This document shows, piece by piece, positions 6,521-25,489 of a DNA stretch of 64,000 nucleotides (positions are counted from its first letter, which is position 1; every line of letters begins with the position of its first letter). A model generated the notes under the pieces. It worked only from the letters and a program-made list of their open reading frames with translations. It was not told the DNA's origin and searched no databases. The stretch is taken from positions 309,486 through 373,485 of IMG/VR virus record IMGVR_UViG_3300042558_004148; one strand, given 5' to 3'. The position numbers were made by a program, and so were the translations under genes.

Positions 6521-6553
6521 TTTTTTTTATACCGGGAAGGTTTAATATATTTG
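6521..6553 (+). promoter_or_regulatory. class-1 promoter
   Basis: TTTTTTTTATACCG-11nt-TATATTTG. Confidence 0.7.
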
Positions 6554-9151: not shown

Positions 9152-9183
9152 TTTTTTTATATCGTGAAATATTATTATCTTTA
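9152..9183 (+). promoter_or_regulatory. class-1 promoter for the first tRNA cluster
   Basis: TTTTTTTATATCG-11nt-TATCTTTA. Confidence 0.65.
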
Positions 9184-9215
9184 CGTCATACAAATAAGAC
9201 ACAATGAAAACTAAA

Positions 9216-9289
9216 GGCCCCGTAGCTCAGCTGGATAGAGCAATTCACTTCTAATGAATAGGTCACACGTTCGAATCGTGTCGGGGTCA
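9216..9289 (+). tRNA. tRNA-Arg(TCT)
   Basis: Cloverleaf; anticodon arm ATTCA-CTTCTAA-TGAAT. Confidence 0.95.
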
Positions 9290-9297
9290 CAAAAAAT

Positions 9298-9379
9298 GCT
9301 CCTTTGGTGGAATTGGTAGACACGCTAGACTTAGGATCTAGTGCCGAGAGGTGTGAGAGTTCGAGTCTCTCAGGGAGTA
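9298..9379 (+). tRNA. tRNA-Leu(TAG)
   Basis: CTAGA-CTTAGGA-TCTAG; long variable arm. Confidence 0.95.
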
Positions 9380-9433
9380 CAACGGCTTTGATGGAGAGCC
9401 AAAAGTAGGTGATGAACCTACGTCCATCAAAAA

Positions 9434-9507
9434 GGTCTTGTAGCTCAGTTGGTTAGAGCACCGCACTCATAATGCGTAGGTCCCTGGTTCGAGTCCAGGC
9501 TGGACCA
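9434..9507 (+). tRNA. tRNA with CAT anticodon, probably Ile2 (lysidine)
   Basis: CCGCA-CTCATAA-TGCGT; lacks initiator features; Ile2 versus Met is inference. Confidence 0.85.
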
Positions 9508-9510
9508 CTA

Positions 9511-9540
9511 AATCCCGCCCAATAAGGGTGGGATTTTTTA
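9511..9540 (+). terminator. intrinsic terminator
   Basis: AATCCCGCCC-AATAA-GGGTGGGATT followed by a T run. Confidence 0.8.
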
Positions 9541-12553: not shown

Positions 12554-13858
12554 ATGTCTAAGAAATTTGTTTTCGAATCATTAAGTGATTTCATAAATTA
12601 TAAGCTTTTAACAGAGACTCCAAACGGAACTCTAAATGAGGCTGACTCTAAATCCTCCCCTTGGGATTTTAAATTTGATAGCGGTGAATTTAAAAAAGAT
12701 GACGTAAGTCCAGATCAGATAAAAAAATTAGAGGTAGATTTTAAAAATAGGATAATTCCAGTTTTAAATAATCAGAACTACATCGGTCAGAAACTTAATG
12801 TAACAATATCTTCAGCATCAAGTAAGGTTCCTGTCAATCCATCAGGATCTGTTGCAAAAGCATTAAAGGCTGCAGGTTATTCAACAGATAATGACGGCCT
12901 ATGTAAAGCTAGAGGTAATACTGTTGTTGAGTTGATAAAAGACCTAATGTACAATACATTCGGTGAAGGTATGGACAGGAAGGAATTTCTTAAGTCCGCC
13001 GAAAAGAAAATGGAATTCATAAATAAGCCAATGCCTAATATTGGACCAGATTATGATAAATCTAAAGGTGATAATCCGGATGATCAGAAATTTAAGGACA
13101 ATCAATTTATTTCTGCGACACTCGTAGCAAGTGGTGAACCAATTGGTGATGATATAAAGATATCATGTAAAATGGATAAAAGTTTCTCTGGTAGAAAGGC
13201 TGATGCTAGCAACGGATATGCAGGTTATGATAAAACAGTTTACCTTACAGCTAAGGCTGGCCAGAAAATGGAGATATTCTTTGATCCATTAGTTATACCA
13301 GATGCTATATTATTTTCATACTCAGGAAAGGAGATTAAACTTTCACCATTTATGGGTGCATTCGGTGCTAAATATATTAGAGGTGAATATAGCAAGGAAA
13401 AAGAGGATGCGTTAAATGCAGATGCTAAAGCGGGTAAAAATGCTCCTGGTAAAAGAGAGAACATTGGAGGAAAAAATTATTTAGTTATTGATTATAAGGA
13501 TTACCTTAATAATGTTATCAATAAAGGTGGTTCATTGGTTAAAGCAATAGAGACTAAACTATCTTCGCTTGGTCTAAAACCTATCAAAGAACTTTGTCCG
13601 GAATTTTTTGATTCAGCAGGAAAAATAGAGGTCTATAGAAATAAGGATCTTAGTGAAATTAAAATAGATGACACCAATAAAGTTTGGGAATGGACATACG
13701 ATCTGCTTAAATCTGGTGCATTAAAAGAATCTCCAAAGGCTGACATAAAGAGTTTAAGTATAGAGGTTACTAAAAATGCAGTAAGAGACGCAGTTAAATT
13801 AGTTGCTTTCTCACCGGTAGCTGGAACCCAATTTAAAATAAGAACAGTTTGTAAATAA
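12554..13858 (+). CDS. hypothetical protein, putative head-packaged (FVFESLSDF...LLTE)
   Basis: 434-aa ORF; GATATATA at 12524-12531. Confidence 0.7.
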   Translation: MSKKFVFESLSDFINYKLLTETPNGTLNEADSKSSPWDFKFDSGEFKKDDVSPDQIKKLEVDFKNRIIPVLNNQNYIGQKLNVTISSASSKVPVNPSGSVAKALKAAGYSTDNDGLCKARGNTVVELIKDLMYNTFGEGMDRKEFLKSAEKKMEFINKPMPNIGPDYDKSKGDNPDDQKFKDNQFISATLVASGEPIGDDIKISCKMDKSFSGRKADASNGYAGYDKTVYLTAKAGQKMEIFFDPLVIPDAILFSYSGKEIKLSPFMGAFGAKYIRGEYSKEKEDALNADAKAGKNAPGKRENIGGKNYLVIDYKDYLNNVINKGGSLVKAIETKLSSLGLKPIKELCPEFFDSAGKIEVYRNKDLSEIKIDDTNKVWEWTYDLLKSGALKESPKADIKSLSIEVTKNAVRDAVKLVAFSPVAGTQFKIRTVCK

Positions 13859-14253
13859 TGAGCAATAATATAAAAACTTTCGAAAGTTTCTCGTATCCAA
13901 TTAACGAGGAGGCAGCTTTACCAAAGATGCCGGATTTTCTTAAAAAAGCTGGAGCTAAAGAAGACCACTTCCATGGAGGAGGACCTGTTAGGATGAACCC
14001 ACCAAATAATTCTTGGATAATCGAGGTAAAATCGCCCAAAGGTATATTTAAGAAAGAGCATACATGGGGATTAGTATTTTTTCCTAACGGTACATTCACA
14101 ACCGGAATAACCCCAGAGGATTCAAACGGTCCATTCAATAGCGGTGGTAAATGGAAGGCTAGTCCTTCGGATTCATTTACTATGCTGAATAAAAAAATAC
14201 AGGGAGTATCTATGACATTCAATAGCTTATTTTCTCCTACCACATATATGTAA
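13858..14253 (+). CDS. hypothetical protein (MSNNIKTFESF)
   Basis: TAATG coupling with the upstream gene. Confidence 0.7.
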   Translation: MSNNIKTFESFSYPINEEAALPKMPDFLKKAGAKEDHFHGGGPVRMNPPNNSWIIEVKSPKGIFKKEHTWGLVFFPNGTFTTGITPEDSNGPFNSGGKWKASPSDSFTMLNKKIQGVSMTFNSLFSPTTYM

Positions 14254-14284
14254 ATAATAAAAATCAAAAAAAAATCAAAAAATA

Positions 14285-14316
14285 TTTTTTTTAATCGAAA
14301 CTTTATTATAAATTTG
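14285..14316 (+). promoter_or_regulatory. class-1 promoter for tRNA array A
   Basis: TTTTTTTTAATCG-11nt-TAAATTTG; late-type GATATATA at 14339-14346. Confidence 0.75.
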
Positions 14317-14369
14317 CATAAAATATTAAAATCAATTAGATATATAGTCTATTAAACATTAAAAACAAA

Positions 14370-14498
14370 ATGAAAACATTCTTCGGAAATATCGCCATTA
14401 ATTTTATGCCACAAGGCAATAACCCGTTTGTACAGGTGGGGATTGCAAAATGGTATAATGGCCAATACGAGAAACCGGAAGATGTAATAGTAGGTTAA
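14370..14498 (+). CDS. 42-aa putative leader peptide (MKTFFGNIAINFMPQGNNPFVQVGIAKWYNGQYEKPEDVIVG)
   Basis: A-rich initiation region, between a promoter and a terminator hairpin. Confidence 0.6.
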   Translation: MKTFFGNIAINFMPQGNNPFVQVGIAKWYNGQYEKPEDVIVG

Positions 14499-14521
14499 GA
14501 TAATAATAAAACTTAAATATT

Positions 14522-14558
14522 AAAAACTCCGATTCTCAAAAAGAATCGGAGTTTTTTT
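14522..14558 (+). terminator. terminator/attenuator hairpin directly before tRNA-Phe
   Basis: AAAAACTCCGATTCT-CAAAA-AGAATCGGAGTTTTT plus TT. Confidence 0.85.
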
Positions 14559-14562
14559 ATTG

Positions 14563-14635
14563 GGTGAGGTAGCAAAGTTGGTCTATGCAGCGGACTGAAA
14601 ATCCGATGATGACGGTTCGATCCCGTCCCTCACCA
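14563..14635 (+). tRNA. tRNA-Phe(GAA)
   Basis: GCGGA-CTGAAAA-TCCGA. Confidence 0.9.
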
Positions 14636-14720
14636 CAGAATAAATTAAATATTAAAATGAAGCGAAAACAGTAAGGTCCTCTAGCTTAGATTAAGCTATG
14701 GCCATTAATTAAAAAATAAT

Positions 14721-14795
14721 GATCCCGTAGCTCAGTTGGTTTAGAGCACCTCACTTTTAATGAGGGAGTCGTGAGTTCGAATCTCACCGGGATCA
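14721..14795 (+). tRNA. tRNA-Lys(TTT)
   Basis: CCTCA-CTTTTAA-TGAGG. Confidence 0.95.
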
Positions 14796-14821
14796 CTCAT
14801 AAATGAATTTCATTTATATAA

Positions 14822-14894
14822 CGGGGTGTAGATCAGTTGGTAGATCGCCTGGTTTGGGACCAGGAGGCCGTCAGTTCGAGCCTGGCCACCCCGA
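14822..14894 (+). tRNA. tRNA-Pro(TGG) copy 1
   Basis: CCTGG-TTTGGGA-CCAGG. Confidence 0.92.
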
Positions 14895-14903
14895 CAGAAT
14901 AAA

Positions 14904-14979
14904 CGGGAAATAGAGGAGTTAGGTCGTCCTCGCCTGCCTTGGACGCAGGAGCTCGCAGGTTCGAATCCTGCTTTCCCGA
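14904..14979 (+). tRNA. tRNA-Pro(TGG) copy 2
   Basis: CCTGC-CTTGGAC-GCAGG. Confidence 0.9.
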
Positions 14980-14985
14980 CAAAAT

Positions 14986-15058
14986 GGGGCCGTAGTTTAA
15001 TTGGCTAAAATTTCTGACTTGCACTCAGAGGACCCGGGTTCGATCCCCGGTAGCTCCA
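14986..15058 (+). tRNA. tRNA-Ala(TGC)
   Basis: TCTGA-CTTGCAC-TCAGA; G3:U70 pair. Confidence 0.9.
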
Positions 15059-15068
15059 CTATTAAAAT

Positions 15069-15141
15069 ACGTCGGTAGCTCAATTGGTAGAGCACTGGTC
15101 TCCAAAACCAGGGGTTGTAGGTTCGATTCCTGCCCGGCGTG
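15069..15141 (+). tRNA. tRNA-Trp(CCA)
   Basis: CTGGT-CTCCAAA-ACCAG. Confidence 0.93.
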
Positions 15142-15151
15142 CAAATTAAAT

Positions 15152-15222
15152 TGTCCTTTGGTCTAATGGCAGGACACGTGGTTTTGGTCCACGCGGTGGA
15201 GGTTCGAATCCTCCAGGGACAA
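15152..15222 (+). tRNA. tRNA-Gln(TTG)
   Basis: CGTGG-TTTTGGT-CCACG. Confidence 0.93.
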
Positions 15223-15325
15223 CAAATTGTTCATTGACATATGGAATAGCAAGGTACGTAATACGTAAAGTGCATTTGCAAAAAGTTATTGGTTCGAATA
15301 GATATATAGATAAAAAATCTATTTT

Positions 15326-15985
15326 ATGCAAAGTTGTGAAAATTGTGGGAATGTACATAATGGTGAATTGGGTAGCGGGAGATTTTGCTCTCTAAAATGC
15401 TCTAGAGGATTTAGTACTAAATCTAAAAGATCGGAAATAAATTATAAGGTTTCGAAAACATTGACAGGAAAGGGAAACCCGCCAGAAATAAAAGAATGTG
15501 GCCACTGTAAAAATAAATTTGAAATTTCTTGGTCAAAACGTCTACAGACATGTTGTTCAAGAAAATGCGCCGCACAATTAAAATGGCTGGATGATGATTA
15601 TAGAAAAAATATAACGGAAGCTTCTTCAAAATCAGCTTATGAAAAACACAAAAATCCAGACATTAAGTTCGGGTGGAGAACAAGGTCAAAATTTGAGATG
15701 TCATATCCTGAAAGTATAGCAAAATCAATTCTTGATGAATATGGCATACAATATGAATATGAATATCCATTTCATCCATATTTTATAGATTTTGCAATCG
15801 TTGATCATAAAATTGCTATCGAGATAGACGGAAGACAGCATAATCAAAACGAGAGAATGTTAATAGATATTAAAAAAGATAAAAAATTGATGGAGAATGG
15901 ATGGAGAATATTTAGAATAAAGTTTCCAGAGGATAATATTAAAAATAGCATTAAAAATATATTGGCAGATATACCCTCCGCCTGA
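15326..15985 (+). CDS. free-standing endonuclease: Zn-finger modules plus DUF559/Vsr-like PD-(D/E)xK domain
   Basis: CENC...FCSLKC; CGHC...CCSRKC; YFIDFAIVDHKIAIEIDGRQH...DKKLMENGWRIFRI; GATATATA at 15301. Confidence 0.85.
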   Translation: MQSCENCGNVHNGELGSGRFCSLKCSRGFSTKSKRSEINYKVSKTLTGKGNPPEIKECGHCKNKFEISWSKRLQTCCSRKCAAQLKWLDDDYRKNITEASSKSAYEKHKNPDIKFGWRTRSKFEMSYPESIAKSILDEYGIQYEYEYPFHPYFIDFAIVDHKIAIEIDGRQHNQNERMLIDIKKDKKLMENGWRIFRIKFPEDNIKNSIKNILADIPSA

Positions 15986-16040
15986 TACGCGGTAGAAAGG
16001 TTAACTGGTTATATGTGGGTTCGAATCCCATTCTGCCAAC
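15962..16040 (+). ncRNA. tRNA-like RNA without a canonical D arm (GAT anticodon-like loop)
   Basis: TTGGCAGA/TCTGCCAA acceptor; GTGGG-TTCGAAT-CCCAT T arm; CCGC-CTGATAC-GCGG. Confidence 0.65.
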
Positions 16041-16072
16041 ATAAGATTTGTAAAAAATCGACAACTAAAAAT

Positions 16073-16146
16073 TCTCCTGTAGCTCAGTTGGTTAGAGCAT
16101 CTGACTGTTAATCAGAGGGTCACTGGTTCGAGTCCAGTCGGGAGAG
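16073..16146 (+). tRNA. tRNA-Asn(GTT) copy 1
   Basis: TCTGA-CTGTTAA-TCAGA; G73. Confidence 0.95.
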
Positions 16147-16152
16147 CAATAA

Positions 16153-16224
16153 GGATCTGTAGCTCAGTGGTAGAGCAGCGCACTGTTAATGCGCTGGTCG
16201 TAGGTTCGAATCCTACCGGGTCCT
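16153..16224 (+). tRNA. tRNA with GTT anticodon (Asn) copy 2, atypical U73
   Basis: GCGCA-CTGTTAA-TGCGC; discriminator T. Confidence 0.88.
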
Positions 16225-16248
16225 CAAAAATAATATATTAACAATAAA

Positions 16249-16512
<264 letters not shown>

Positions 16513-16552
16513 TGTAGGTGCCTCAAGGGACTGCAGCCCTACTACACTCTAT

Positions 16553-16624
16553 GCAGGTATCGTATAACGGCTATTACTCCAGACTTCCAATCTGGAGATT
16601 GGGGTTCGATTCCCCATACCTGCT
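16553..16624 (+). tRNA. tRNA-Gly(TCC)
   Basis: CCAGA-CTTCCAA-TCTGG. Confidence 0.95.
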
Positions 16625-16686
16625 CAGAATGTGGAACCACATCGATCCCGTAATGCCACGGCTTGTGCACAAGTAACGGGATGCAT

Positions 16687-16760
16687 GGCGAGATAGCTCA
16701 GATGGTTAGAGCGCGGGAGTCATAACCCCGAGGCCGTAGGTTCGATTCCTACTCTCGCTA
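16687..16760 (+). tRNA. tRNA-Met(CAT), elongator type
   Basis: GGCGAGA/TCTCGCT acceptor; CGGGA-GTCATAA-CCCCG. Confidence 0.85.
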
Positions 16761-16820
16761 CTAAAAAATAAATTAATATGAAAAAGAAATTCGACGCTCA
16801 TTAGGTTTAATAACCTAAAA

Positions 16821-17018
16821 ATGAGTAAAATGAGTAAAAACACAAACAGAGCAAAATTGAATAAGGCAACTTGTTCTAGAGACTACCGATTAATTTGGTT
16901 AAAATGGGAATTTCCTATGTATTGGGATGAAGGATTAAATTTTAAAAAAGGTCATCCCTCAATAAAATATAGAAGTTATAAAACATGGAAACATAGCAGA
17001 AAAACCAGATGGAAATAA
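16821..17018 (+). CDS. small basic hypothetical protein
   Basis: 65-aa ORF whose start lies inside a hairpin. Confidence 0.55.
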   Translation: MSKMSKNTNRAKLNKATCSRDYRLIWLKWEFPMYWDEGLNFKKGHPSIKYRSYKTWKHSRKTRWK

Positions 17019-17030
17019 TTATCTTATTAT

Positions 17031-17061
17031 TTTTTAATCCCGTAGTATTTTATTAATCTTG
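17031..17061 (+). promoter_or_regulatory. class-1 promoter
   Basis: TTTTTAATCCCG-11nt-TAATCTTG. Confidence 0.6.
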
Positions 17062-17075
17062 TAAAAAATAAAAAG

Positions 17076-17597
17076 ATGAAAACAAAATTCTATGAACTGT
17101 CACAAAACAACAGCGGAGGATCATTCGTAGTTGATGATAAACTTTGTCACCGACTTTTCATTGAGGCTGAATCTGAGGAAGAAGCAATCAATATAGCGGA
17201 AGATCTTGGGTGCTATTGGGATGGTGTAGATGAAGGTTCGGATTGTCCGTGTTGCGGAGATAGATGGTACAGATCCGGGAATTTAGTAGATCTAGAAAAT
17301 ATCAACTCCAAATGGGGAGGTTACGAGATCTCCGAATGGTTGACAGATCCCAAGGGTGCAAATGGCGATGATGCTATCAAGAAAATCAAAGCAGAATATG
17401 GTAAATCTGTATGGCTTACAGAACCTATTATAGAAAAAAAATACGGATCTGATAGAATCATAGGTAAAATCAGGCTCGATTCAATAGAGCAATATGCACA
17501 GATTATGGCCAATCTTTATGGATGGACTAAACCTGACTGTCGTATTTTCTATAAAGACGGTAGAATTAAAAACGTATACTCAAAGAAGCTGAAATAA
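17076..17597 (+). CDS. conserved phage hypothetical protein (SQNNSGG...CPCCGDRW)
   Basis: 173-aa ORF with a CxCC motif. Confidence 0.75.
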   Translation: MKTKFYELSQNNSGGSFVVDDKLCHRLFIEAESEEEAINIAEDLGCYWDGVDEGSDCPCCGDRWYRSGNLVDLENINSKWGGYEISEWLTDPKGANGDDAIKKIKAEYGKSVWLTEPIIEKKYGSDRIIGKIRLDSIEQYAQIMANLYGWTKPDCRIFYKDGRIKNVYSKKLK

Positions 17598-17613
17598 AAA
17601 TCAGCTTCTCTAC

Positions 17614-17688
17614 AGTCCCTTAGCTCAGTTGGTTTAGAGCGATTGTTTTACACACAATAGGTCGTCGGTTCGATTCCGGCAGGGACTA
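17614..17688 (+). tRNA. tRNA-Val(TAC)
   Basis: ATTGT-TTTACAC-ACAAT. Confidence 0.95.
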
Positions 17689-17691
17689 CAA

Positions 17692-17884
17692 AAGATCCAA
17701 TTAGTCCGAAAGGATAAAAAAGGAGGAATAAGATGAACAGACAAAAGTCATCTCCAAAGAGTAGAATTAAGCCGGTGTGAGCGCACGCGGAGGCATCCGA
17801 GGGAGGGTATGGAAACCTTCAGCTAGAAATTCAAGGGTATGGAATCAAGGTGTTAGTAGCGGTCTAAAGTCTGAATTGGATCTT
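17692..17884 (+). ncRNA. putative 193-nt structured RNA
   Basis: 11-bp terminal helix AAGATCCAATT/AATTGGATCTT; internal TCC-GAAA-GGA hairpin. Confidence 0.45.
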
Positions 17885-17890
17885 ATATAA

Positions 17891-17977
17891 GGGAATGCGC
17901 CAGAGTTGGAGAGTTGGGACGGACTGTAAATCCGTTGGCTTGCGCCTGAGTAGGTTCGAATCCTACCATTCCCACCA
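17891..17977 (+). tRNA. tRNA-Tyr(GTA) copy 1 (CCA encoded)
   Basis: ACGGA-CTGTAAA-TCCGT. Confidence 0.95.
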
Positions 17978-17989
17978 ATAAAAAAATAA

Positions 17990-18205
17990 ATGGTTATGGA
18001 ATTAAATGAAATTAAAAAATCACTGTATAAGGAAAATCCACATGCAGTTTTGAGGATGATTAGAAAGAGTGTTGCTTATTATTCTGCGCATTTAGTTTCG
18101 AATGACTCCATTGTGCAATTTCAAGTTCCTATTGAAGACATGGGTGATGCTGATTTCTTATCATCGATGGACTCGAAACTTTTAATCCGCTGGATAACTA
18201 TATAA
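17990..18205 (+). CDS. small hypothetical protein
   Basis: EIKKSLYKENP...VPIEDMGDADF...KLLIRWI. Confidence 0.7.
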   Translation: MVMELNEIKKSLYKENPHAVLRMIRKSVAYYSAHLVSNDSIVQFQVPIEDMGDADFLSSMDSKLLIRWITI

Positions 18206-18225
18206 TATCGAAACATCCCTTAATC

Positions 18226-18308
18226 GGGTCAGTTGAGCAACTGGTTGGCTCGCCGGACTGTAAATCCGGTCCCTTCGGGGCGTGTAGGTTCGAATCCTAC
18301 CTGGCCCA
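18226..18308 (+). tRNA. tRNA-Tyr(GTA) copy 2
   Basis: CCGGA-CTGTAAA-TCCGG. Confidence 0.93.
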
Positions 18309-18323
18309 CTAAATTTTTTAAAA

Positions 18324-18716
18324 ATGAACAAAGAAAGATTATCAAAATTAGCGGGTGATTTATTAGATATCCCATCAAGAATTTCTGAAATTCAAGGAAG
18401 AATCCTTGATCATAACGAGGAGATTCAAACAACGAACAATGAGATTTCTCAGATCGAGGCAACAATAAAAAGCGAGATTGGCGCTCAGTTGGACGATAAT
18501 GGGAAGAAACTTTACACTAATGCAGAATCAAGAGAAGCTGCTTTCGTCGAGATTTCAAATTCCAATCAGGAATTAGTTTCTAAAAGAAATAGATTAAGTT
18601 CTTTACAGGGATATGTTTCTATCGAAAGAATAAAAATGGAATCTCTAAGTAATGAACAAAGAAATATTAGAGCAGTTCTATATTTCTTCGGAGGTAGCTT
18701 CGAGGATGTAGTATAA
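18324..18716 (+). CDS. coiled-coil hypothetical protein
   Basis: 130 aa with a heptad pattern. Confidence 0.7.
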   Translation: MNKERLSKLAGDLLDIPSRISEIQGRILDHNEEIQTTNNEISQIEATIKSEIGAQLDDNGKKLYTNAESREAAFVEISNSNQELVSKRNRLSSLQGYVSIERIKMESLSNEQRNIRAVLYFFGGSFEDVV

Positions 18717-18721
18717 TAAAT

Positions 18722-18847
18722 GGGTAACCTTCCGGGGTGGGAACCGGAGCCAACGCGTAATTTTGGCGTCATCCATGACTAAGGTTAATAAGGAAACAGC
18801 AAGACTCGAGTAATTGCAAATCCAGGGTTCGATTCCCCTGTTACCCA
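18722..18847 (+). ncRNA. 126-nt tRNA-like RNA with a multibranched interior
   Basis: GGGTAA/TTACCC-A acceptor; CAGGG-TTCGATTC-CCCTG; TTCCGG-GGTGGGAA-CCGGAG hairpin. Confidence 0.6.
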
Positions 18848-18879
18848 CAAAAATAATGAAGATTAATAATTAAAAGATT

Positions 18880-19338
18880 ATGACAATTAGAGAACAGATA
18901 AATGCAGATTTCGTAACTGCAATGAAAGCAAAGGACGAAAATGCTAAAATGGCTTTAAATAGCATCAAGGCTTCTATTACTAATTCAGAAAAGGCAAGTC
19001 CAACATGGATTGCAACTGACGATGAGGTAATTAAAATTGTCAGCAAAGGAATCAAACAACGTGAGGAATCTATTAAAATGTATGATTTGGCAAATAGACC
19101 AGAATTGGTTACTAAAGAACAGGATGAAATTAGTATTCTGAAAAAATACATGCCTGCTCAGATGAGTGAACAAGAGATTGCGGATGCCTTGACAGTAATC
19201 ATGCAAGGTTTTGCTGGAGTAATTACAAATTCTCAAGCACTTGTTGGTAAAACTATTGGAGAATTCAATAAACAATACCAAGGTCGTGCAGATATCGGAA
19301 CAGTTAAAATGCTAGTTAATTCATTAGTTGAATGTTAA
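18880..19338 (+). CDS. GatB/YqeY domain protein
   Basis: IREQINADFVTAMKAKD...IKQREESIKMYDLANRPELVTKEQDEISILKKYMPAQMSE. Confidence 0.9.
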   Translation: MTIREQINADFVTAMKAKDENAKMALNSIKASITNSEKASPTWIATDDEVIKIVSKGIKQREESIKMYDLANRPELVTKEQDEISILKKYMPAQMSEQEIADALTVIMQGFAGVITNSQALVGKTIGEFNKQYQGRADIGTVKMLVNSLVEC

Positions 19339-19360
19339 TTAGTTAATTTTTGCTAAATAA

Positions 19361-19392
19361 TTTTTTTACCCCGTATCTATGTGATACATTTG
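19361..19392 (+). promoter_or_regulatory. class-1 promoter
   Basis: TTTTTTTACCCCG-11nt-TACATTTG. Confidence 0.75.
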
Positions 19393-19434
19393 CAGAAATA
19401 ATAAAAATATAGTTAATCTTTAAAGATAATAAAT

Positions 19435-20352
19435 ATGAGAAGAAATTCATTAGAATCAAAGGGTCTTTCAATGTCACAGGCTCAGTCAGTATCAAATCTT
19501 TGTAACCAAAGAGCTAGAGACATCAACTTTAAATTAGCTGATATAAATAATATCAGCAAATCGATCACTGTCGATGGAATGGAATATCATGAAGTTGAGG
19601 CTAAACCAATCCCGGTGAATGTTAATGAGCTTCTTGATCAAAAGTCTAAGCTGCATGCAACCCAATCATTTCTTATGGAGAATATCAAAGCCAAGGAGGA
19701 AATGCTAAACGATGTCAAATGGGATGAATTTGAATTCGATAGGGACCAGCCTGTTAAGGGAGAATTAAAATCAATCAAGAAGTTAAACGAGGTTGATGAA
19801 AAATGGGGATGGGAACAGTTATCGACTGCCGAATATAATGAATATTTGGAGGCTGAAGCATATGCTTCCCATGTTGGTCAATTCATCCACAAAGGTGGTA
19901 AATTAGATCAATTAAGAAGTGAGCTTCCGAATATTAAGAAATTGGAATGGATGGAAATCGAGGCTGGAAAAAAGACTCCGGTTAAGGTTGAGATTCATCA
20001 CACAAGTGATGATCTTTTAAAAATCCATGAAGATCTTGCTTCTACCCACAGAAAGCATGAACAAAGGGTTAACTACTTTAAAGCAAAAATAAAGAACCTT
20101 GTTACTTCGGAAAATGCAAGGATTGCTAAAGAAAATGCAGTTGCTCAGGCTGGAATAAAAGAACACAACGATAATGTTCTTGATGCTTATAATAAAGCAA
20201 TGGAAGAATACAGATCTAGCTATAGAGAAGCTTCGGATTTATTCGAAGAAAAAAGACAAAAAGAGATCGCTCGAATCTCAGCTCTAAGAATTGAGGTTGA
20301 TCCAAGATTTAAAGAAACAATTGATATGTTTCTATCTGAGGTTTCAGAATAA
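19435..20352 (+). CDS. coiled-coil-rich hypothetical protein (GLSMSQAQSVSNLCNQ)
   Basis: 305-aa ORF downstream of a promoter. Confidence 0.75.
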   Translation: MRRNSLESKGLSMSQAQSVSNLCNQRARDINFKLADINNISKSITVDGMEYHEVEAKPIPVNVNELLDQKSKLHATQSFLMENIKAKEEMLNDVKWDEFEFDRDQPVKGELKSIKKLNEVDEKWGWEQLSTAEYNEYLEAEAYASHVGQFIHKGGKLDQLRSELPNIKKLEWMEIEAGKKTPVKVEIHHTSDDLLKIHEDLASTHRKHEQRVNYFKAKIKNLVTSENARIAKENAVAQAGIKEHNDNVLDAYNKAMEEYRSSYREASDLFEEKRQKEIARISALRIEVDPRFKETIDMFLSEVSE

Positions 20353-20360
20353 TTAAAAGT

Positions 20361-20709
20361 GGGGTTGGTTATGGATAGTCAGGAGACGATTCCATAACCA
20401 TTTGATTGAAGGTGGTAATGTTTTATATAAAATCTTATCGATGATAGTTATAAACTAATTTAAGTGTTTCTACGGAAACAGATAAAACAGCAACCGCTTC
20501 CTTTACAAAAACAAAAAAAACTGAGATAGAACTCAATTGTTAAACAAGTTACTGAAATCTCATAGAGAAAGAGGAATCTTTACCACTAGACAGATAATTG
20601 GTTAGCAAAAAGAGACTTGGTTTTTGACTTTGCCTTTGTAGTAAAGGAAGGTCTTTGACGTTGGCATTGTCGTTAGCATAGTCTATACACTTTATCATTT
20701 TCATAACCC
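20361..20709 (+). ncRNA. putative ~350-nt structured RNA or 3' UTR element
   Basis: GGTTATGGA/TCCATAACC; CTTCCTTTAC (20497)/GTAAAGGAAG (20641); TGTTTC-TACG-GAAACA. Confidence 0.4.
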
Positions 20710-20715
20710 ATAATA

Positions 20716-20787
20716 TTACCAGTTGGCGTATTGGCATACGCACCCGATCGTAAGGGAGATATTAGGTTCGATTCCTATGCTGGTAGC
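20716..20787 (+). ncRNA. tRNA-like/pseudo-tRNA with an irregular anticodon arm
   Basis: TTACCAG/CTGGTAG; GCGTA-TTGGCA-TACGC; TAGG-TTCGATT-CCTA; CCC-GATCGTAA-GGG. Confidence 0.55.
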
Positions 20788-20792
20788 AAATA

Positions 20793-20972
20793 GAGTTTGT
20801 CGGTCCGTGATGATGATTAATTCTTTTATGGATGCAGTAGGAGTAAACGTGTTGTTGGCGTAAACCACATTGCTATAAACCACATTAGTAGACCTGTAGA
20901 TGGTGATAATTAATTATCCCGTAGGGTTATAATAATAAATCAATCCATAGTGAATACAGCGTCGGCAAGCTC
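20793..20972 (+). ncRNA. putative 180-nt structured RNA
   Basis: GAGTTTGTCG/CGGCAAGCTC closing helix; TATGGAT/ATCCATA inner helix. Confidence 0.45.
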
Positions 20973-20979
20973 CATTTAT

Positions 20980-21094
20980 GTTACTGTAGCTTAGCGGAAG
21001 AGCAGTCTCCCTGTAACCGTGCGTAGGGTTCGATTCCCTTTCAGATTGGATGCGAGACGTGGGATTGGCATAGGTTCGAATCCTATCAGTAACT
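20980..21094 (+). ncRNA. tRNA-like RNA with a 44-nt anticodon loop that contains a second T-arm motif
   Basis: Perfect acceptor GTTACTG/CAGTAAC, anticodon stem GTCTC/GAGAC and T arm ATAGG-TTCGAAT-CCTAT; inner AGGG-TTCGATT-CCCT. Confidence 0.7.
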
Positions 21095-21099
21095 CAAAA

Positions 21100-21298
21100 G
21101 TGTTGTTAGCTCAATTTGGTCAGAGCTTCCGATGGGTAGATATTAAGAAGATTCTAGACACTATCTTAAAAAGGGCCACAGGGACACGGAGTGCTAGGTG
21201 ATATGCGTAATGAAATTAATTACTTCATGTAACAGGTCATAGGGTCCGTAAACGGTACATAAGGCCGTTGGGTATAGGTTCGAATCCTGTACAACACA
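21100..21298 (+). ncRNA. 199-nt tRNA-like RNA with large internal expansions
   Basis: GTGTTGT/ACAACAC-A; D arm GCTC-AATTTGGTCA-GAGC; ATAGG-TTCGAAT-CCTGT. Confidence 0.7.
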
Positions 21299-21415
21299 CG
21301 ATGTGGCGTTGACCTGTCTGCTGCCACAATGGATAAGAGGAATAGCTTTTAGGAAGTAGATCCAATTTGATGCGCAAAAAAGTGGAGGGTGACGAACGGG
21401 GAGAGACTCGTCCAT

Positions 21416-21487
21416 AGTTCCATAGTTTAACGGATAGAATTTCCCACTACGGATGGGAAGATGAGGGTTCGAATCCTTCTGGGACTA
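21416..21487 (+). tRNA. tRNA-Arg(ACG)
   Basis: TCCCA-CTACGGA-TGGGA. Confidence 0.9.
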
Positions 21488-21525
21488 CTAATTATCGAAT
21501 AATATTTAGAAAATAATAGAAAATA

Positions 21526-21557
21526 TTTTTTTTATCCGAAACTTTTCCCTATTTTTG
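21526..21557 (+). promoter_or_regulatory. class-1 promoter for tRNA array B
   Basis: TTTTTTTTATCCG-11nt-TATTTTTG; GATATATA at 21580-21587. Confidence 0.75.
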
Positions 21558-21606
21558 CATAGAAATTAAAAGGGAGAAAGATATATAAATCTCAAAATAA
21601 CATAAA

Positions 21607-21708
21607 ATGAAACAAGTACAATACACATTATCGTCACTGCATTTAGATACAACAAGTACATCTTGTGAGTTATCACTGTGCGTTGAAAAGGAGAAGGTAT
21701 TGGTATAA
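21607..21708 (+). CDS. 33-aa putative leader peptide (MKQVQYTLSSLHLDTTSTSCELSLCVEKEKVLV)
   Basis: Same position as the 14370 leader: promoter, ORF, terminator, tRNAs. Confidence 0.6.
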   Translation: MKQVQYTLSSLHLDTTSTSCELSLCVEKEKVLV

Positions 21709-21728
21709 GTATATAAAAACTTAAATCT

Positions 21729-21760
21729 AAAAGGTCTCCTCTAAAAAGGAGACCTTTTTT
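21729..21760 (+). terminator. terminator/attenuator hairpin before the tRNA-Ser array
   Basis: AAAAGGTCTCCT-CTAAAA-AGGAGACCTTTT plus TT. Confidence 0.85.
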
Positions 21761-21797
21761 ATTTTACGAGATCTTTGACATATTGGAAGCCAAAAAA

Positions 21798-21881
21798 GGA
21801 GGAGTAATTAAGCTGGCGCTTGACCTAGTCTTGAAAACTAGCGGTACCCTCGGGTATGGGGATCGATACCTCACTCCTCCG
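21798..21881 (+). tRNA. tRNA-Ser(TGA) copy 1
   Basis: CTAGT-CTTGAAA-ACTAG; long variable arm; T loop ATCGATA. Confidence 0.85.
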
Positions 21882-21890
21882 CAAATGAAT

Positions 21891-21977
21891 GGAAAGTTGT
21901 CCGAGTGGCTTAAGGAGCACGCTTGGAAAGCGTGTGCATCCGAAAGGGTGCCATAGGTTCGAATCCTATACTTTCCG
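21891..21977 (+). tRNA. tRNA-Ser(GGA)
   Basis: CACGC-TTGGAAA-GCGTG. Confidence 0.95.
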
Positions 21978-21982
21978 CACAT

Positions 21983-22055
21983 TCCTCCGTGGCTCAATTG
22001 GTAGAGCAGCTGATTTGTAATCAGCAGGTTGCAGGTTCGATCCCTGTCGGAGGAT
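21983..22055 (+). tRNA. tRNA-Thr(TGT)
   Basis: GCTGA-TTTGTAA-TCAGC. Confidence 0.93.
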
Positions 22056-22070
22056 CTAATAAATAAAAAT

Positions 22071-22142
22071 GGCACTGTGGTCGATTGGCTCAGGCGTCCG
22101 CCTGCAAAGCGGAAGAGATAGGTTCGATTCCTATTGGTGCCT
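22071..22142 (+). tRNA. tRNA-Cys(GCA)
   Basis: TCCGC-CTGCAAA-GCGGA; U73. Confidence 0.92.
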
Positions 22143-22160
22143 CTAATTAATAACTTGCTT

Positions 22161-22583
22161 ATGAATGATATAGAAAAAATAGCTTTAGCAAAAGCTAAGA
22201 TCGAGGAGGAAAGAGCTAACAGGAAAGAAGCTATGATTAAATACTGGAATAATTTAAAGAAATTTGAAAATCCATGCGACGTTCCAGGTATTCCTAGAGT
22301 TGAAGAAAAGGAGTATAAAGAATTCTATGTACCCAGACTTATAGCTGCTGGAGCAATACCGAAAGCAGATCTTGTAGATGGACAATTTTACTTCGGTGAA
22401 TATAGAAATGCTAATGTTGGTAAATGGATAGCTGAAAAAAACTTATTTGAACACTGGAGATATAAATTCGGATTTCGTTTAGATACTTGTAATCACTTCG
22501 AGGATGATAATGGATTTGCATTATTCGTTCCTATTAGATTAGCAAATGATGCTGAAATAGAGGAATACCTCAGCACAAAATAA
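22161..22583 (+). CDS. hypothetical protein (probable start MNDIEK)
   Basis: The track start at 22134 lies inside tRNA-Cys; ATG at 22161 is outside it. Confidence 0.7.
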   Translation: MNDIEKIALAKAKIEEERANRKEAMIKYWNNLKKFENPCDVPGIPRVEEKEYKEFYVPRLIAAGAIPKADLVDGQFYFGEYRNANVGKWIAEKNLFEHWRYKFGFRLDTCNHFEDDNGFALFVPIRLANDAEIEEYLSTK

Positions 22584-22588
22584 TACAT

Positions 22589-22663
22589 GGTGGCCGTAGT
22601 TCAGTTGGTTAGAACGTCTGGTTGTGGTCCAGAAGGTCGTCGGTTCGATCCCGACCGGTCACC
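22589..22663 (+). tRNA. tRNA-His(GTG)
   Basis: G-1; TCTGG-TTGTGGT-CCAGA; C73. Confidence 0.95.
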
Positions 22664-22794
22664 CTTTTTTATTACTAAGATTATGGCTTTTATTAAGATC
22701 CATCAAAGGTTTTGAATTAGTTTAGATTCTCAGGGCTAATATAGTCGACGATTCGAAATCAACTTTAGAATATATAATTATAAAAATAAAATTT

Positions 22795-23478
22795 ATGTGG
22801 AATGAAACCGAGTCTATTCTTGCTAAAAAATTACTAGAGGATGGAAAAAAATATAGAGAAATATCAGAAGTAATAGGTAAAAGTTACAATTCAATTAAAA
22901 ACCATCTTTTGAAAAAATATGGAATAAATCAATCTCAATTCGACAACTTAAGAAATATCGATATTCTAATTTGCCTTTGTTGTGGAGATGAGTTCGATAA
23001 TGAGAAATCTGGCAAGACAAGAAAATATTGCTCAGTGACGTGTTCAAATATAAGTAGAGGGAAAAAAAATCTAAAAAATTGTCCGATCTGTTTTAATACA
23101 GTAGATAAAGAAAAAAGAACCAAATACTGTTCACCAGAATGTCATAGTAAATCTATAACAAAAATAAATCAGGAAAAATTAGACGGCGGGATTTTTACTG
23201 ATTCAAACAGAAAAACTATTAAGAAGTTTTTAATATTAAAAAGAGGACACTGCTGTGAAATTTGTAAAAATGAAAGTTGGAATGGCGTAAATATACCATT
23301 AATATTGGATCACATTGACGGAAATCCCCAAAATAACCTAGAAAATAATTTTAGGTTGATTTGTCCAAATTGTGACGCACTAACACCAACTTATATGGGG
23401 AGAAATATAAAAAATATAAAAAGAAAACCCCGACAAAGAGATTTAGATAGGGATATAAAAATACAGAAGAATTCGTGA
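22795..23478 (+). CDS. free-standing HNH endonuclease with an N-terminal HTH and Zn-finger modules
   Basis: CEIC...LILDHIDGNPQNNLENNFRLICPNCDA; YCSVTC and YCSPEC; GAATATATA at 22768. Confidence 0.9.
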   Translation: MWNETESILAKKLLEDGKKYREISEVIGKSYNSIKNHLLKKYGINQSQFDNLRNIDILICLCCGDEFDNEKSGKTRKYCSVTCSNISRGKKNLKNCPICFNTVDKEKRTKYCSPECHSKSITKINQEKLDGGIFTDSNRKTIKKFLILKRGHCCEICKNESWNGVNIPLILDHIDGNPQNNLENNFRLICPNCDALTPTYMGRNIKNIKRKPRQRDLDRDIKIQKNS

Positions 23479-23495
23479 TTATGATCGGATCAATT

Positions 23496-23576
23496 GCTTG
23501 AGTGGTGGAATTAGGTAGACACGCTAGATTTAGGATCTAGTGCTTCGGCGTGAGGGTTCGATTCCCTCCTTGAGTA
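23496..23576 (+). tRNA. tRNA-Leu(TAG) copy 2
   Basis: CTAGA-TTTAGGA-TCTAG. Confidence 0.92.
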
Positions 23577-23581
23577 CAAAT

Positions 23582-23667
23582 GCCCCGGTGGTGAAACTGG
23601 TAGACACGCTGGACTTAAAATTCAGTGGGCCGTAAGGTCCGTGCGGGTTCGACTCCCGCCCGGGGTA
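23582..23667 (+). tRNA. tRNA-Leu(TAA)
   Basis: CTGGA-CTTAAAA-TTCAG. Confidence 0.93.
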
Positions 23668-23672
23668 CAATT

Positions 23673-23758
23673 GGAGAGTGATCCGTGATGGCGATCGGGT
23701 CCGCCTGCTAAGCGTGACGTACGGGAAACCGTATGAGGTTCGATTCCTCCGCTCTCCG
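23673..23758 (+). tRNA. tRNA-Ser(GCT)
   Basis: CGC-CTGCTAA-GCG; long variable arm; GGAGAG/CTCTCC-G. Confidence 0.82.
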
Positions 23759-23784
23759 CTTTTAATTAAAAAAATTAGATATTA

Positions 23785-23816
23785 TTTTTATTACCCGTGA
23801 AACATTATTATATTTG
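23785..23816 (+). promoter_or_regulatory. class-1 promoter for tRNA array C
   Basis: TTTTTATTACCCG-11nt-TATATTTG. Confidence 0.75.
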
Positions 23817-23863
23817 CAGAGTAATAAAAATAACATATAATAAACAGTTCATTGAAAATATAT

Positions 23864-23936
23864 CGTGGGGTAGAGCAGTAGGTAGCTCATTGGGCTCATA
23901 ACCCAAAGGTCGTCGGTTCGAGTCCGGCCCCCGCTA
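23864..23936 (+). tRNA. initiator tRNA-fMet(CAT) copy 1
   Basis: Unpaired 1:72; GGG/CCC in the anticodon stem. Confidence 0.92.
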
Positions 23937-23941
23937 CTAAA

Positions 23942-24089
23942 GGTTGCGAAAGCTATAGGTCAGTATGTAATGCTGATTGGCCAATGGATTAATGATGATT
24001 TAGTATTACTGCCCGAGATACCGGTTAAGCAGCATGGTAAGTGACTAAGTAAGTAATTGATATAGTAGGTTCGATTCCTACCGTGACCA
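23942..24089 (+). ncRNA. 148-nt tRNA-like RNA (acceptor and T arm only)
   Basis: GGTTGCG/CGTGACC-A; GTAGG-TTCGATT-CCTAC. Confidence 0.65.
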
Positions 24090-24094
24090 CATAT

Positions 24095-24167
24095 TGCGGA
24101 GTAGAGCAGTTGGTAGCTCAGTGGGCTCATAACCCAAAGGTCGCAGGTTCGAGTCCTGCCTCCGCTA
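24095..24167 (+). tRNA. initiator tRNA-fMet(CAT) copy 2
   Basis: TGCGGAG/CTCCGCT; GGG-CTCATAA-CCC. Confidence 0.9.
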
Positions 24168-24356
24168 CGAGTCGCTTTTAGTTATCCCTGTAGAAGATAG
24201 AGGTTTGGGTAGTGAAGTAAACCAGTGGAATTCTACAACTTTAAAAGTTTGTGTGACAAAGTAAGGTCTAATTTTCCTGACAAGGGGGCTTCCCGACGAA
24301 AAATAGAAGCTCAACTAATTAAGTAGAATCTGAATCGCTCAATTCAGATTCGAAAC

Positions 24357-24457
24357 GGTCCGGTGGTGAAGTTGGTAAACACTAAGGTGGATGTATTCGA
24401 AGGCCAAGAATAACTAACATCTACTAGGCGTCGCAGGTTCGAATCCTGCCCGGTCCA
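24357..24457 (+). ncRNA. 101-nt tRNA-like RNA with an elongated anticodon arm
   Basis: GGTCCGG/CCGGTCC-A; GTG-AAGTTGGTAAA-CAC; GTGGATGT/ACATCTAC; GCAGG-TTCGAAT-CCTGC. Confidence 0.7.
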
Positions 24458-24507
24458 CAAATCTCAAGATTAATTACCTTGAGGCTGTCAGGTTCGAAAC
24501 TGACGAT

Positions 24508-24611
24508 TGGCTATAGTGTATTGGAGCACAGCAGAACGGAGTACAAGAATAGTGCTTAGCACTCACGGAAAGGGGACGCAGGTTTAAGGTTCGAATCCTT
24601 ATTAGTCACCA
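24508..24611 (+). ncRNA. 104-nt tRNA-like RNA with an expanded anticodon region, ending ACCA
   Basis: TGGCTA/TAGTCA; GTG-TATTGGAG-CAC; TAAGG-TTCGAAT-CCTTA. Confidence 0.65.
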
Positions 24612-24735
24612 AATTTAAAAGTACACCGGAACGCTCTGATTTGTCGAAAGACTTTTCAACGACGGTACGAGGCAGTCTCTGTTTATTCGCGGTACAGAGA
24701 AAGAGAGGTTCATCCCGCTGCGTCCTCGTTATAAT

Positions 24736-24807
24736 GGTCCTGTAGTTAAACGGCTATAATGCTGCCCTGTCACGGCAGAGTTCGGAGTTCGATTCTCCGT
24801 GGGACCG
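24736..24807 (+). tRNA. tRNA-Asp(GTC)
   Basis: CTGCC-CTGTCAC-GGCAG. Confidence 0.95.
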
Positions 24808-24809
24808 CA

Positions 24810-24951
24810 AAAAGATAATGGTTCTTTCTACGTAGGTTGTCGACAAACCGAAATAGGTAAAAAAAGTTCACCACCCCTTGTGCCTGGATCCAGTAAAACT
24901 CAGGAAAGCACTTAAGATTGGAGCGAGAAGGGTACTCCATCATTATCTTTT
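24810..24951 (+). ncRNA. putative 142-nt structured RNA
   Basis: AAAAGATAATG/CATTATCTTTT closing helix; GTGC-CTG...CAG-GAAA-GCAC. Confidence 0.45.
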
Positions 24952-24956
24952 TAACC

Positions 24957-25043
24957 GGAGGAGTCGCATAGTGGTTTAGTGCACCGGTCTTGAAAACCGG
25001 CGATCCTGAAAGGGGTCCGTGAGTTCGAATCTCACCTCCTCCG
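24957..25043 (+). tRNA. tRNA-Ser(TGA) copy 2
   Basis: CCGGT-CTTGAAA-ACCGG. Confidence 0.95.
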
Positions 25044-25047
25044 CAAA

Positions 25048-25342
25048 GGGTAAGAGATACCCTCCATGTTTAGATCTCATTAAAGGATCTCGGTTAATGT
25101 CCAGGTGGTAACCGAAAGCTGGTTTGGAAAGCAATCATCTCATGGGTGGTAATGAGTCAAATTAGTTAAAATACTGGAACTGAGAACAAAGGCAGGTAGC
25201 AGAGCCTCTCAGTAGCTTGACAGGTTTTTATGTGGTAAGACACTAATGAAAAGCTTCGCATGGCTCGTACCCATGGGAGTGATGGTTCTCGAAACAGCTA
25301 GAGTAACCCGTTAAAATCTAGCTTAGCACATCTCACTAAGTG
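25048..25342 (+). ncRNA. putative ~295-nt structured RNA
   Basis: Several hairpins (CTCAT/ATGAG, CTGAGA/TCTCAG, AGCTAGA/TCTAGCT, CTTAG/CTAAG); no long ORF; richer in GC than the coding background. Confidence 0.45.
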
Positions 25343-25347
25343 AACAT

Positions 25348-25419
25348 GGCCCGTTCGACTATCGGTTAGGTCGTCAGGTTTTCATCCTGGAAAGAGGGGT
25401 TCGATTCCCCTACGGGCTA
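25348..25419 (+). tRNA. tRNA-Glu(TTC)
   Basis: TCAGG-TTTTCAT-CCTGG. Confidence 0.95.
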
Positions 25420-25489
25420 CTATGTGTTAGATACTGTAATATTTAACACAGAGCCAATGAAAGTGATTTACAGATTGCTTGAATTGGTT

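Follow-up and report, generated by a model that had tools for sequence, protein, structure and literature searches.

A phage from lake water, represented by a 373-kb virus genome, appears to control its tRNA genes by leader-peptide attenuation. Two blocks of its tRNA genes are each preceded by a promoter, a short open reading frame (ORF) and an intrinsic terminator, and the core of each ORF is spelled only with amino acids whose tRNAs lie in the block behind the terminator. The most likely explanation, based on sequence comparison only, is that slow decoding of any of these codons lets transcription read into the tRNA genes, so that the tRNAs are probably made only when they run short. Leader-peptide attenuation itself is well known from amino-acid biosynthesis operons, but we found no published precedent for its use on tRNA genes.

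The region studied, here called the window, consists of the last 64 kb (64,000 nucleotides) of a 373,485-bp virus record (IMGVR_UViG_3300042558_004148) with direct terminal repeats, which is rated complete. Near-identical DNA is present in many lake-water metagenomes. The window carries 32 tRNA genes, all on the + strand, while the whole genome has 33. The host is inferred to be a Bacteroidota bacterium, as the promoters carry the TAnnTTTG box, start codons lack a Shine-Dalgarno sequence, a structural protein finds only Flavobacterium phages, and homologues of a neighbouring gene carry the Por_Secre_tail domain.

An initial annotation, made from the sequence alone, had described a promoter, a 42-residue ORF and a strong terminator in front of tRNA-Phe, and had proposed that the last codons of the ORF mimic the 3' arm of the terminator and can pair with its 5' arm. 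All of these elements are present at the positions it gave. The first module is composed of the following features:

14285-14316, + strand: promoter of module 1, with a T-run at 14285-14292, CGAAAC at 14296-14301 and TAAATTTG (Bacteroidota-type -7 box) at 14309-14316.
14339-14346, + strand: GATATATA box, a second promoter-like motif.
14370-14498, + strand: leader ORF 1, 42 codons, of which codons 1-31 are the regulatory part.
14379-14395, + strand: region 1, the 5' strand of the protector helix 1:2.
14404-14458, + strand: central hairpin inside the ORF, nearly invariant in sequence.
14466-14484, + strand: region 2, which pairs either with region 1 or with the 5' arm of the terminator; it contains the proposed mimic GAGAAACCGGAAG at 14469-14481.
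14485-14522, + strand: apical part of the antiterminator hairpin, where 14485-14496 pairs with 14510-14522; the stop codon at 14496-14498 sits at its tip.
14522-14558, + strand: intrinsic terminator (regions 3 and 4), with an A-tract, a 10-bp stem 14527-14536/14542-14551, the loop CAAAA and a T-run at 14552-14558.
14563-18309, + strand: tRNA array A, with Phe, Lys, Pro x2, Ala, Trp, Gln, an Ile-like gene (15963-16039), Asn x2, Gly x2, Met, Val and Tyr x2, interrupted in the window by protein genes.

The promoter belongs to a family defined by a composite motif, which has 25 matches in the genome against 1.9 in shuffled genomes. All but two of these matches are on the + strand, and the downstream sequences mostly run into a start codon or a tRNA. 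It is the only promoter of this class ahead of array A, and no promoter of the family lies inside the array. However, as the array is broken up by protein genes in the window, unrecognised internal promoters may exist.

The terminator folds at -19.4 kcal/mol (z -7.7) and ends in seven U, 4 nt before tRNA-Phe. A generic terminator scan missed it, apparently because part of its T-run pairs with the A-tract. In contrast, the proposed antiterminator is not convincing in the window when its core is taken alone. The best duplex between the leader and the 5' arm is -7.2 kcal/mol and lies elsewhere, against -7.5 +/- 1.8 in shuffles, while the proposed site, which is weakened by a T-to-C change, gives about -6.8. 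However, this duplex is the base of a longer hairpin, 14469-14537, and the whole hairpin is -14.1 kcal/mol (z -3.4), a value reached by 0 of 200 shuffles. The observation is therefore real and more than chance, but the proof comes from relatives and not from the window alone.

To find such relatives we searched IMG/VR, where all relatives are 100% identical over the region and carry no comparative information. In public phage records a DNA similarity search found only tRNA matches, and the leader peptide has no relative in cultured phages. A protein search with the 42-residue ORF, however, found nine variants of 40-42 residues in metagenome contigs. These contigs, together with 13 loci from a metagenome scan, gave about 20 distinct versions of the region (relatives are denoted below by L numbers). 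In all but one of those whose downstream sequence was long enough to read, the order is promoter, GATATATA box, small ORF, hairpin with U-run, 4-9 nt, tRNA-Phe and a tRNA array. The exception is L016, where the array is largely absent. In relatives the array is one compact block directly behind the leader. The order holds even where the upstream genes are different or on the other strand, so the small ORF belongs with the tRNA array and not with the genes before it.

Notable is that the relatives keep three mutually exclusive helices with co-varying changes. The terminator stem (3:4) is kept by compensatory changes, GATTCT/AGAATC against GGATCTT/AAGATTC, and the U-run is invariant. For the antiterminator (2:3), the site homologous to 14469-14481 is the best partner of the 5' arm anywhere in the leader in every relative except the near-identical L032, at -9.3 to -13.4 kcal/mol. 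The site differs between lineages, with five versions of the GAGAA-TCGGA type and one AGATCTGGA type. In a swap test, region 2 of the lineage L021/L024/L027/L043 pairs at -13.3 kcal/mol with its own arm and at about -5.5 with the arm of the other lineage, although the reverse swap is not uniformly worse. The whole hairpins are -14 to -17 kcal/mol in all lineages, against -14 to -19.5 for the terminators.

Further, L021 and L024 differ by a one-base deletion before region 2 and a one-base insertion after it, so the same nucleotides are read in two frames (…DRSGYES against …VDLDMES). This is selection on the RNA and not on the peptide.

The third helix is the upstream protector 1:2, in which codons 4-9 pair with codons 33-38. 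In 11 of 14 sequences tested region 1 is the best upstream partner of region 2, closing the ORF around the central hairpin. This helix also differs in sequence between lineages but is kept, with one fully compensated pair, several G-U changes and a different sequence in the L024 group. It is the fold seen in the full-length minimum-energy structure. The central hairpin does not vary, so its covariation cannot be judged; it may be a pause or scaffold hairpin. RNAalifold recovered 1:2 and the central hairpin but neither the terminator nor 2:3, because indels in the loop and a bulge that shifts position between lineages break the column register. For the same reason, 2:3 was assessed by duplexes in each lineage and by the swap test instead of by column-wise pair counting.

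The hairpin lies only 4-9 nt from the RNase P site of tRNA-Phe, and the alternative folds would also change the 5' leader of the precursor. It is thus conceivable that the leader senses decoding speed but that the folds control processing or stability of the precursor, for example access of RNase P or RNase E, or Rho loading. We consider this unlikely. The hairpin has every feature of an intrinsic terminator, with a GC-containing stem and 7-9 U that are invariant in relatives, and in the second module and in several units of another phage (see below) the terminator is tens of nucleotides from the first tRNA.

Next, we compared the codons of the leader with the tRNAs behind the terminator. The conserved first 31 residues use exactly twelve amino acids: Met, Lys, Phe, Gly, Asn, Ile, Ala, Pro, Gln, Val, Trp and Tyr. 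These are the identities of the tRNAs in array A. Given the amino acid usage of the phage, the probability of 31 of 31 consensus residues falling in this set is 5.75e-8, and 0 of 92,028 windows of 31 residues in the proteome reach it. At the codon level, 31 of the first 33 codons can be read by the array under strict wobble, and all 13 anticodons are sampled. The match is not perfect: Thr at codon 3 and the GCC codon are not covered under strict wobble, codons 34-38 (Glu, Lys, Pro, Glu, Asp) are set by RNA pairing, and some relatives have Ser or Arg at position 6. In addition, the relatives whose arrays were read to the end (L015, L034, L040, L045 and L046) show no Met tRNA in the first array, although the leader keeps an internal Met.

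Interestingly, the window contains a second module of the same design at 21526-21764:

21526-21557, + strand: promoter of module 2, of the same family and with the same internal spacing as in module 1.
21580-21587, + strand: GATATATA box of module 2.
21607-21708, + strand: leader ORF 2, 33 codons, of which codons 7-25 use only Ser, Thr, Cys, His, Leu, Asp and Glu.
21686-21702, + strand: region 2 of leader 2, a copy of the 3' arm of the terminator (AAAAGGAGA).
21729-21764, + strand: intrinsic terminator of module 2 (-17.4 kcal/mol).
21798-25420, + strand: tRNA array B, with Ser-like, Ser, Thr, Cys, His, Leu x2 and Ser, then behind an internal promoter at 23785 Met x2, Asp, Ser and Glu.

All 19 residues of the core of leader 2 belong to the set of its own array (P 1e-8; 4 of 96,168 windows). 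All 19 codons are readable by array B, and each of its anticodons is sampled, including all three Ser and both Leu species. No residue of either core belongs to the set of the other array. However, the promoter at 23785 uncouples the last five tRNAs (Met, Asp, Ser-TGA and Glu) from leader 2. The hairpin 21689-21740 is -12.8 kcal/mol (z -3.3).

An exhaustive protein search with leader 2 returned nothing, and its relatives were instead reached by walking along contigs. Their peptides are quite different but have the same composition. L046, whose array behind the leader has no Leu tRNA, has no Leu in its leader core, while L045, with only Leu-TAA, uses TTA there. The last codons of these leaders copy the 3' arm of their own, different terminator (CTAAGGGA), and the frame differs between L045 and L046. 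Cognate pairs of region 2 and arm give -8.3 to -12.8 kcal/mol, against -5.0 to -6.3 for swapped pairs. The protector helix is clear in L045 and L046 and weaker in the window.

To see if the codon match occurs elsewhere, we studied the 634,780-bp uncultured phage LR745206.1, which shares only tRNA similarity with the window. Around its tRNA arrays we found six units of promoter, short ORF, terminator and array:

Leader enriched in His, Lys, Phe, Trp: array His Phe His Phe Trp Lys x4.
Leader enriched in Ser, Arg: array Arg Ser.
Leader enriched in Tyr, Glu: array Glu x4 Tyr x2.
Leader enriched in Ile, Gly, Ala: array Ile Gly Met Gly (then Gly Ala).
Leader enriched in Met, Thr, Asn, Leu, Val, Ile, Arg: a 19-tRNA array of exactly those seven identities.
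Leader enriched in Pro, Gln, Asp: array Pro Asp x4 Pro Gln x3.

When whole ORFs are scored, with no choice of core, five of the six leaders fit their own array best, and the true assignment has the highest total of all 720 permutations. In all six, the 5' arm of the terminator pairs best with the 3' part of the ORF, 7-27 nt before the stop, and the antiterminator hairpins are -11 to -24 kcal/mol. A paper on huge phages states that its genomes above 634 kb, of which this record may or may not be one, were predicted to infect Bacteroidetes (PMC7162821).

These comparisons bear on two other explanations. The first is that an ordinary small phage gene, with a promoter and terminator of its own and a peptide with its own function, happens to sit in front of the tRNA genes, which would be made by constitutive leak or from an unrecognised promoter. 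The first 31 residues of leader 1 are indeed strongly conserved as a sequence and not only in composition, and intrinsic terminators are probably often leaky. However, the amino acid sets match the downstream arrays twice in this genome and six times in another, the C-terminal part is conserved as nucleotides across frame changes, the 1:2 and 2:3 helices co-vary, leader 2 and the LR745206.1 leaders share composition but not sequence, and only 4 nt separate the terminator from tRNA-Phe. This explanation is therefore very unlikely. The second is that leader 1 encodes an arrest peptide of the SecM/TnaC/Erm-leader kind, stalling the ribosome in response to a ligand or factor rather than to tRNA supply. 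The conservation of residues 1-31, including Trp-Tyr-Asn-Gly near the end of the conserved part, could be taken to indicate this. Much of that conservation can, however, be explained by RNA constraints from region 1 and the central hairpin, and the other seven leaders share no peptide motif, only array-matched composition. We find this equally improbable.

The explanation we favour, with good but not complete confidence, is a ribosome-mediated transcription attenuator, as the initial annotation proposed, here of the trp/his/leu type. Transcription would start at the promoter at 14285-14316, and perhaps also at the GATATATA box. If no ribosome is on the nascent RNA, region 1 pairs with region 2 around the central hairpin, the terminator forms and the polymerase stops 4 nt before tRNA-Phe. 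If a ribosome translates the leader smoothly, it would reach the end of the ORF and sit on the tip of the would-be antiterminator hairpin, so the terminator would again form. In the lineage of the window, region 2 ends about 15 nt before the stop codon, so a terminating ribosome would abut it rather than cover it, and blocking would have to be through occupation of the hairpin tip. If the ribosome instead is delayed within the first 31 or so codons, region 1 and the central hairpin are disrupted while region 2 stays free to pair with the 5' arm, and the polymerase reads into the array.

It should be noted that translation of the ORF, its coupling to transcription, and the direction and size of the response are inferred. 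Three sequencing runs labelled RNA hold a strain with about 90-97% identical contigs and look like DNA; their depth, which is the assembler's, shows no transcript ends, and they give no evidence for or against termination.

As the regulatory codons are cognate to all 13 tRNA species of the array, a shortage of any one of these charged tRNAs would switch on the whole array, an OR gate. The newly made phage tRNAs would then relieve the stall and switch it off again, which is negative feedback by the products of the array. The initial annotation had suggested that the array is switched on only when host translation is attacked. This is narrower than the evidence, since the design would respond to any shortage of the cognate charged tRNAs, including a plain codon-supply mismatch.

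In the attenuators of amino-acid biosynthesis operons (trpL, hisL, leuL, thrL, ilvL, pheL) a short translated leader with regulatory codons is likewise combined with protector, antiterminator and terminator helices, the position of the ribosome decides which fold forms, and the signal is the supply of charged tRNA. Here the controlled genes would be tRNAs and not enzymes, so what is sensed would be the product of the operon itself. Further, the leader carries single or few codons for up to 13 tRNA species rather than runs of one or two amino acids, and such leaders occur several times per phage genome, one per sub-array. The pheM leader of the pheST operon in E. coli appears to be similar in that it controls a translation-apparatus operon by reading the charging of tRNA-Phe, but it senses one amino acid, controls a synthetase and is cellular. 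T-box riboswitches also couple tRNA status to read-through of a terminator, but they bind uncharged tRNA directly through a specifier codon and the T-box sequence and need no translation. An Rfam scan of 14200-22000 at E up to 1 gave no T-box match, and no curated Rfam leader family reached its threshold: there was only a sub-threshold Phe_leader match at module 2 (28.4 bits against 55) and none at module 1.

Why phages carry tRNA genes has been debated for decades, with codon compensation, replacement of degraded host tRNAs and escape from anticodon nucleases as the rival views. Phage tRNA clusters, such as those of T4, T5 and huge phages (PMC7162821), are thought to compensate for codon supply or for tRNA cleavage by host defences (PMC10264068, PMC10802454). 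Full-text literature searches returned no paper on leader-ORF control of tRNA operons or phage tRNA arrays, and the huge-phage paper has no occurrence of "leader" or "attenuat". It is possible, and in our view more likely than not, that huge phages of Bacteroidota carry a general, self-referential sensor in which each tRNA sub-array is gated by its own leader, so that the phage measures, species by species, whether decoding capacity is sufficient and transcribes only the tRNA blocks that are needed. This would be the first case of leader-peptide attenuation controlling tRNA genes, in a phylum where attenuation has been little studied, and would give a built-in response to codon-supply mismatch and to host defences that cleave tRNA. 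For annotation it gives a rule, a short ORF plus a terminator in front of a tRNA array with array-matched composition, which explains many unannotated small ORFs in huge-phage genomes. The multi-codon leaders, as natural OR-gate sensors of translational capacity, could also be reused in synthetic biology.

TAnnTTTG alone is not enriched in the genome, only the composite motif is, and a generic sigma-70 scan found 71 matches against 67.7 expected. The GATATATA box is invariant in relatives and has the same spacing from the T-run in both modules. It was considered as an RNA element of the leader, but this was rejected, as it looks like a genome-wide promoter-like box: the genome has 75 copies, where about 50 are expected from base composition, and by eye most of them lie shortly upstream of a start codon.

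Apart from the leaders themselves, the tRNA region of the window contains the following features:

9152-9536, a three-tRNA operon (Arg-TCT, Leu-TAG, Met)
13850-14248, a stretch holding most of the 131-residue gene at 13858-14253
14563-14636, tRNA-Phe
15326-15985, a gene for an HNH/homing-type endonuclease
15963-16039, a weak tRNA prediction
20717-20787 and 20980-21094, two unusual tRNA predictions
21798-21880, a tRNA-like gene

Notable is that the array is interrupted by the endonuclease gene, identified by PHROG matches, which sits between tRNA-Gln and the Ile-like tRNA and has its own GATATATA box at 15301. All four sequencing runs had zero depth across most of the gene (15358-15948), and in relatives tRNA-Ile directly follows tRNA-Gln. 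The gene looks like a mobile insertion into the array. The 3' end of its ORF is overlapped by the weak tRNA, which is called by Rfam (31.2 bits) but missed by ARAGORN. This tRNA has an Ile GAT anticodon loop, but the D-arm region is deviant and there is a long extra segment; it may be a damaged copy of the tRNA-Ile(GAT) seen in relatives.

There is also variation close to the first leader. The 131-residue gene is absent from a related strain, where a joint from 13849 to 14249 is seen in two runs. It is also absent from relatives such as L012, in which the 434-residue gene is followed directly by the leader promoter. Further, the tRNA-Phe of the window differs from the nearly uniform tRNA-Phe of most relatives, both in the D-arm and in the stretch after the anticodon stem. 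The closest relative, L032, shares the same downstream sequence.

The tRNA-like gene lies directly after the terminator of the second module. It scores 46 bits on the tRNA-Sec model, where the threshold is 47, and it has a long extra arm, while its anticodon loop was read by eye as UGA (Ser). The same sequence is visible in two of the compared stretches, L046 and L047, and in the phage LR745206.1 (stretch L049, about 2050-2135). Two further predictions lie between the two arrays, upstream of tRNA-Arg(ACG): ARAGORN reports a tRNA with a two-base anticodon at 20717-20787, and Rfam reports a 115-nt tRNA match (47.4 bits) at 20980-21094, which could mean an intron or insertion.

Next, two promoter-like motifs were studied over the whole genome. 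The GATATATA box has 75 copies, while about 50 are expected from base composition; in the window it is found for example at 2591, 3488, 12524, 14339, 15301, 21580, 33003, 33785 and 48729. Judged by eye, most copies lie shortly upstream of a start codon and on the strand of the gene, and the box is probably a second, phage-specific promoter class, reminiscent of T4 late promoters. The other motif is a composite promoter-like family (T-run, CCGTAA-like element, TAnnTTTG) with 25 hits against 1.9 in shuffles, all but two of them on the + strand. In the window its members are at 6521, 9152, 14285, 21526, 23785 and 35448, and the copies next to tRNAs share a CGAAAC or CGTGAAAC variant of the upstream element.

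Interestingly, the three-tRNA operon has its own promoter of this composite family and a terminator right after the last tRNA, but no leader ORF; not all tRNA units of this phage seem to be attenuated. Finally, in LR745206.1 (stretch L050, about 1090-1160), a stretch with a T-arm-like GGTTCGAGTC motif lies between the terminator of the Tyr/Glu leader and the first tRNA-Glu. It was not called by ARAGORN, but it could be another unusual tRNA.
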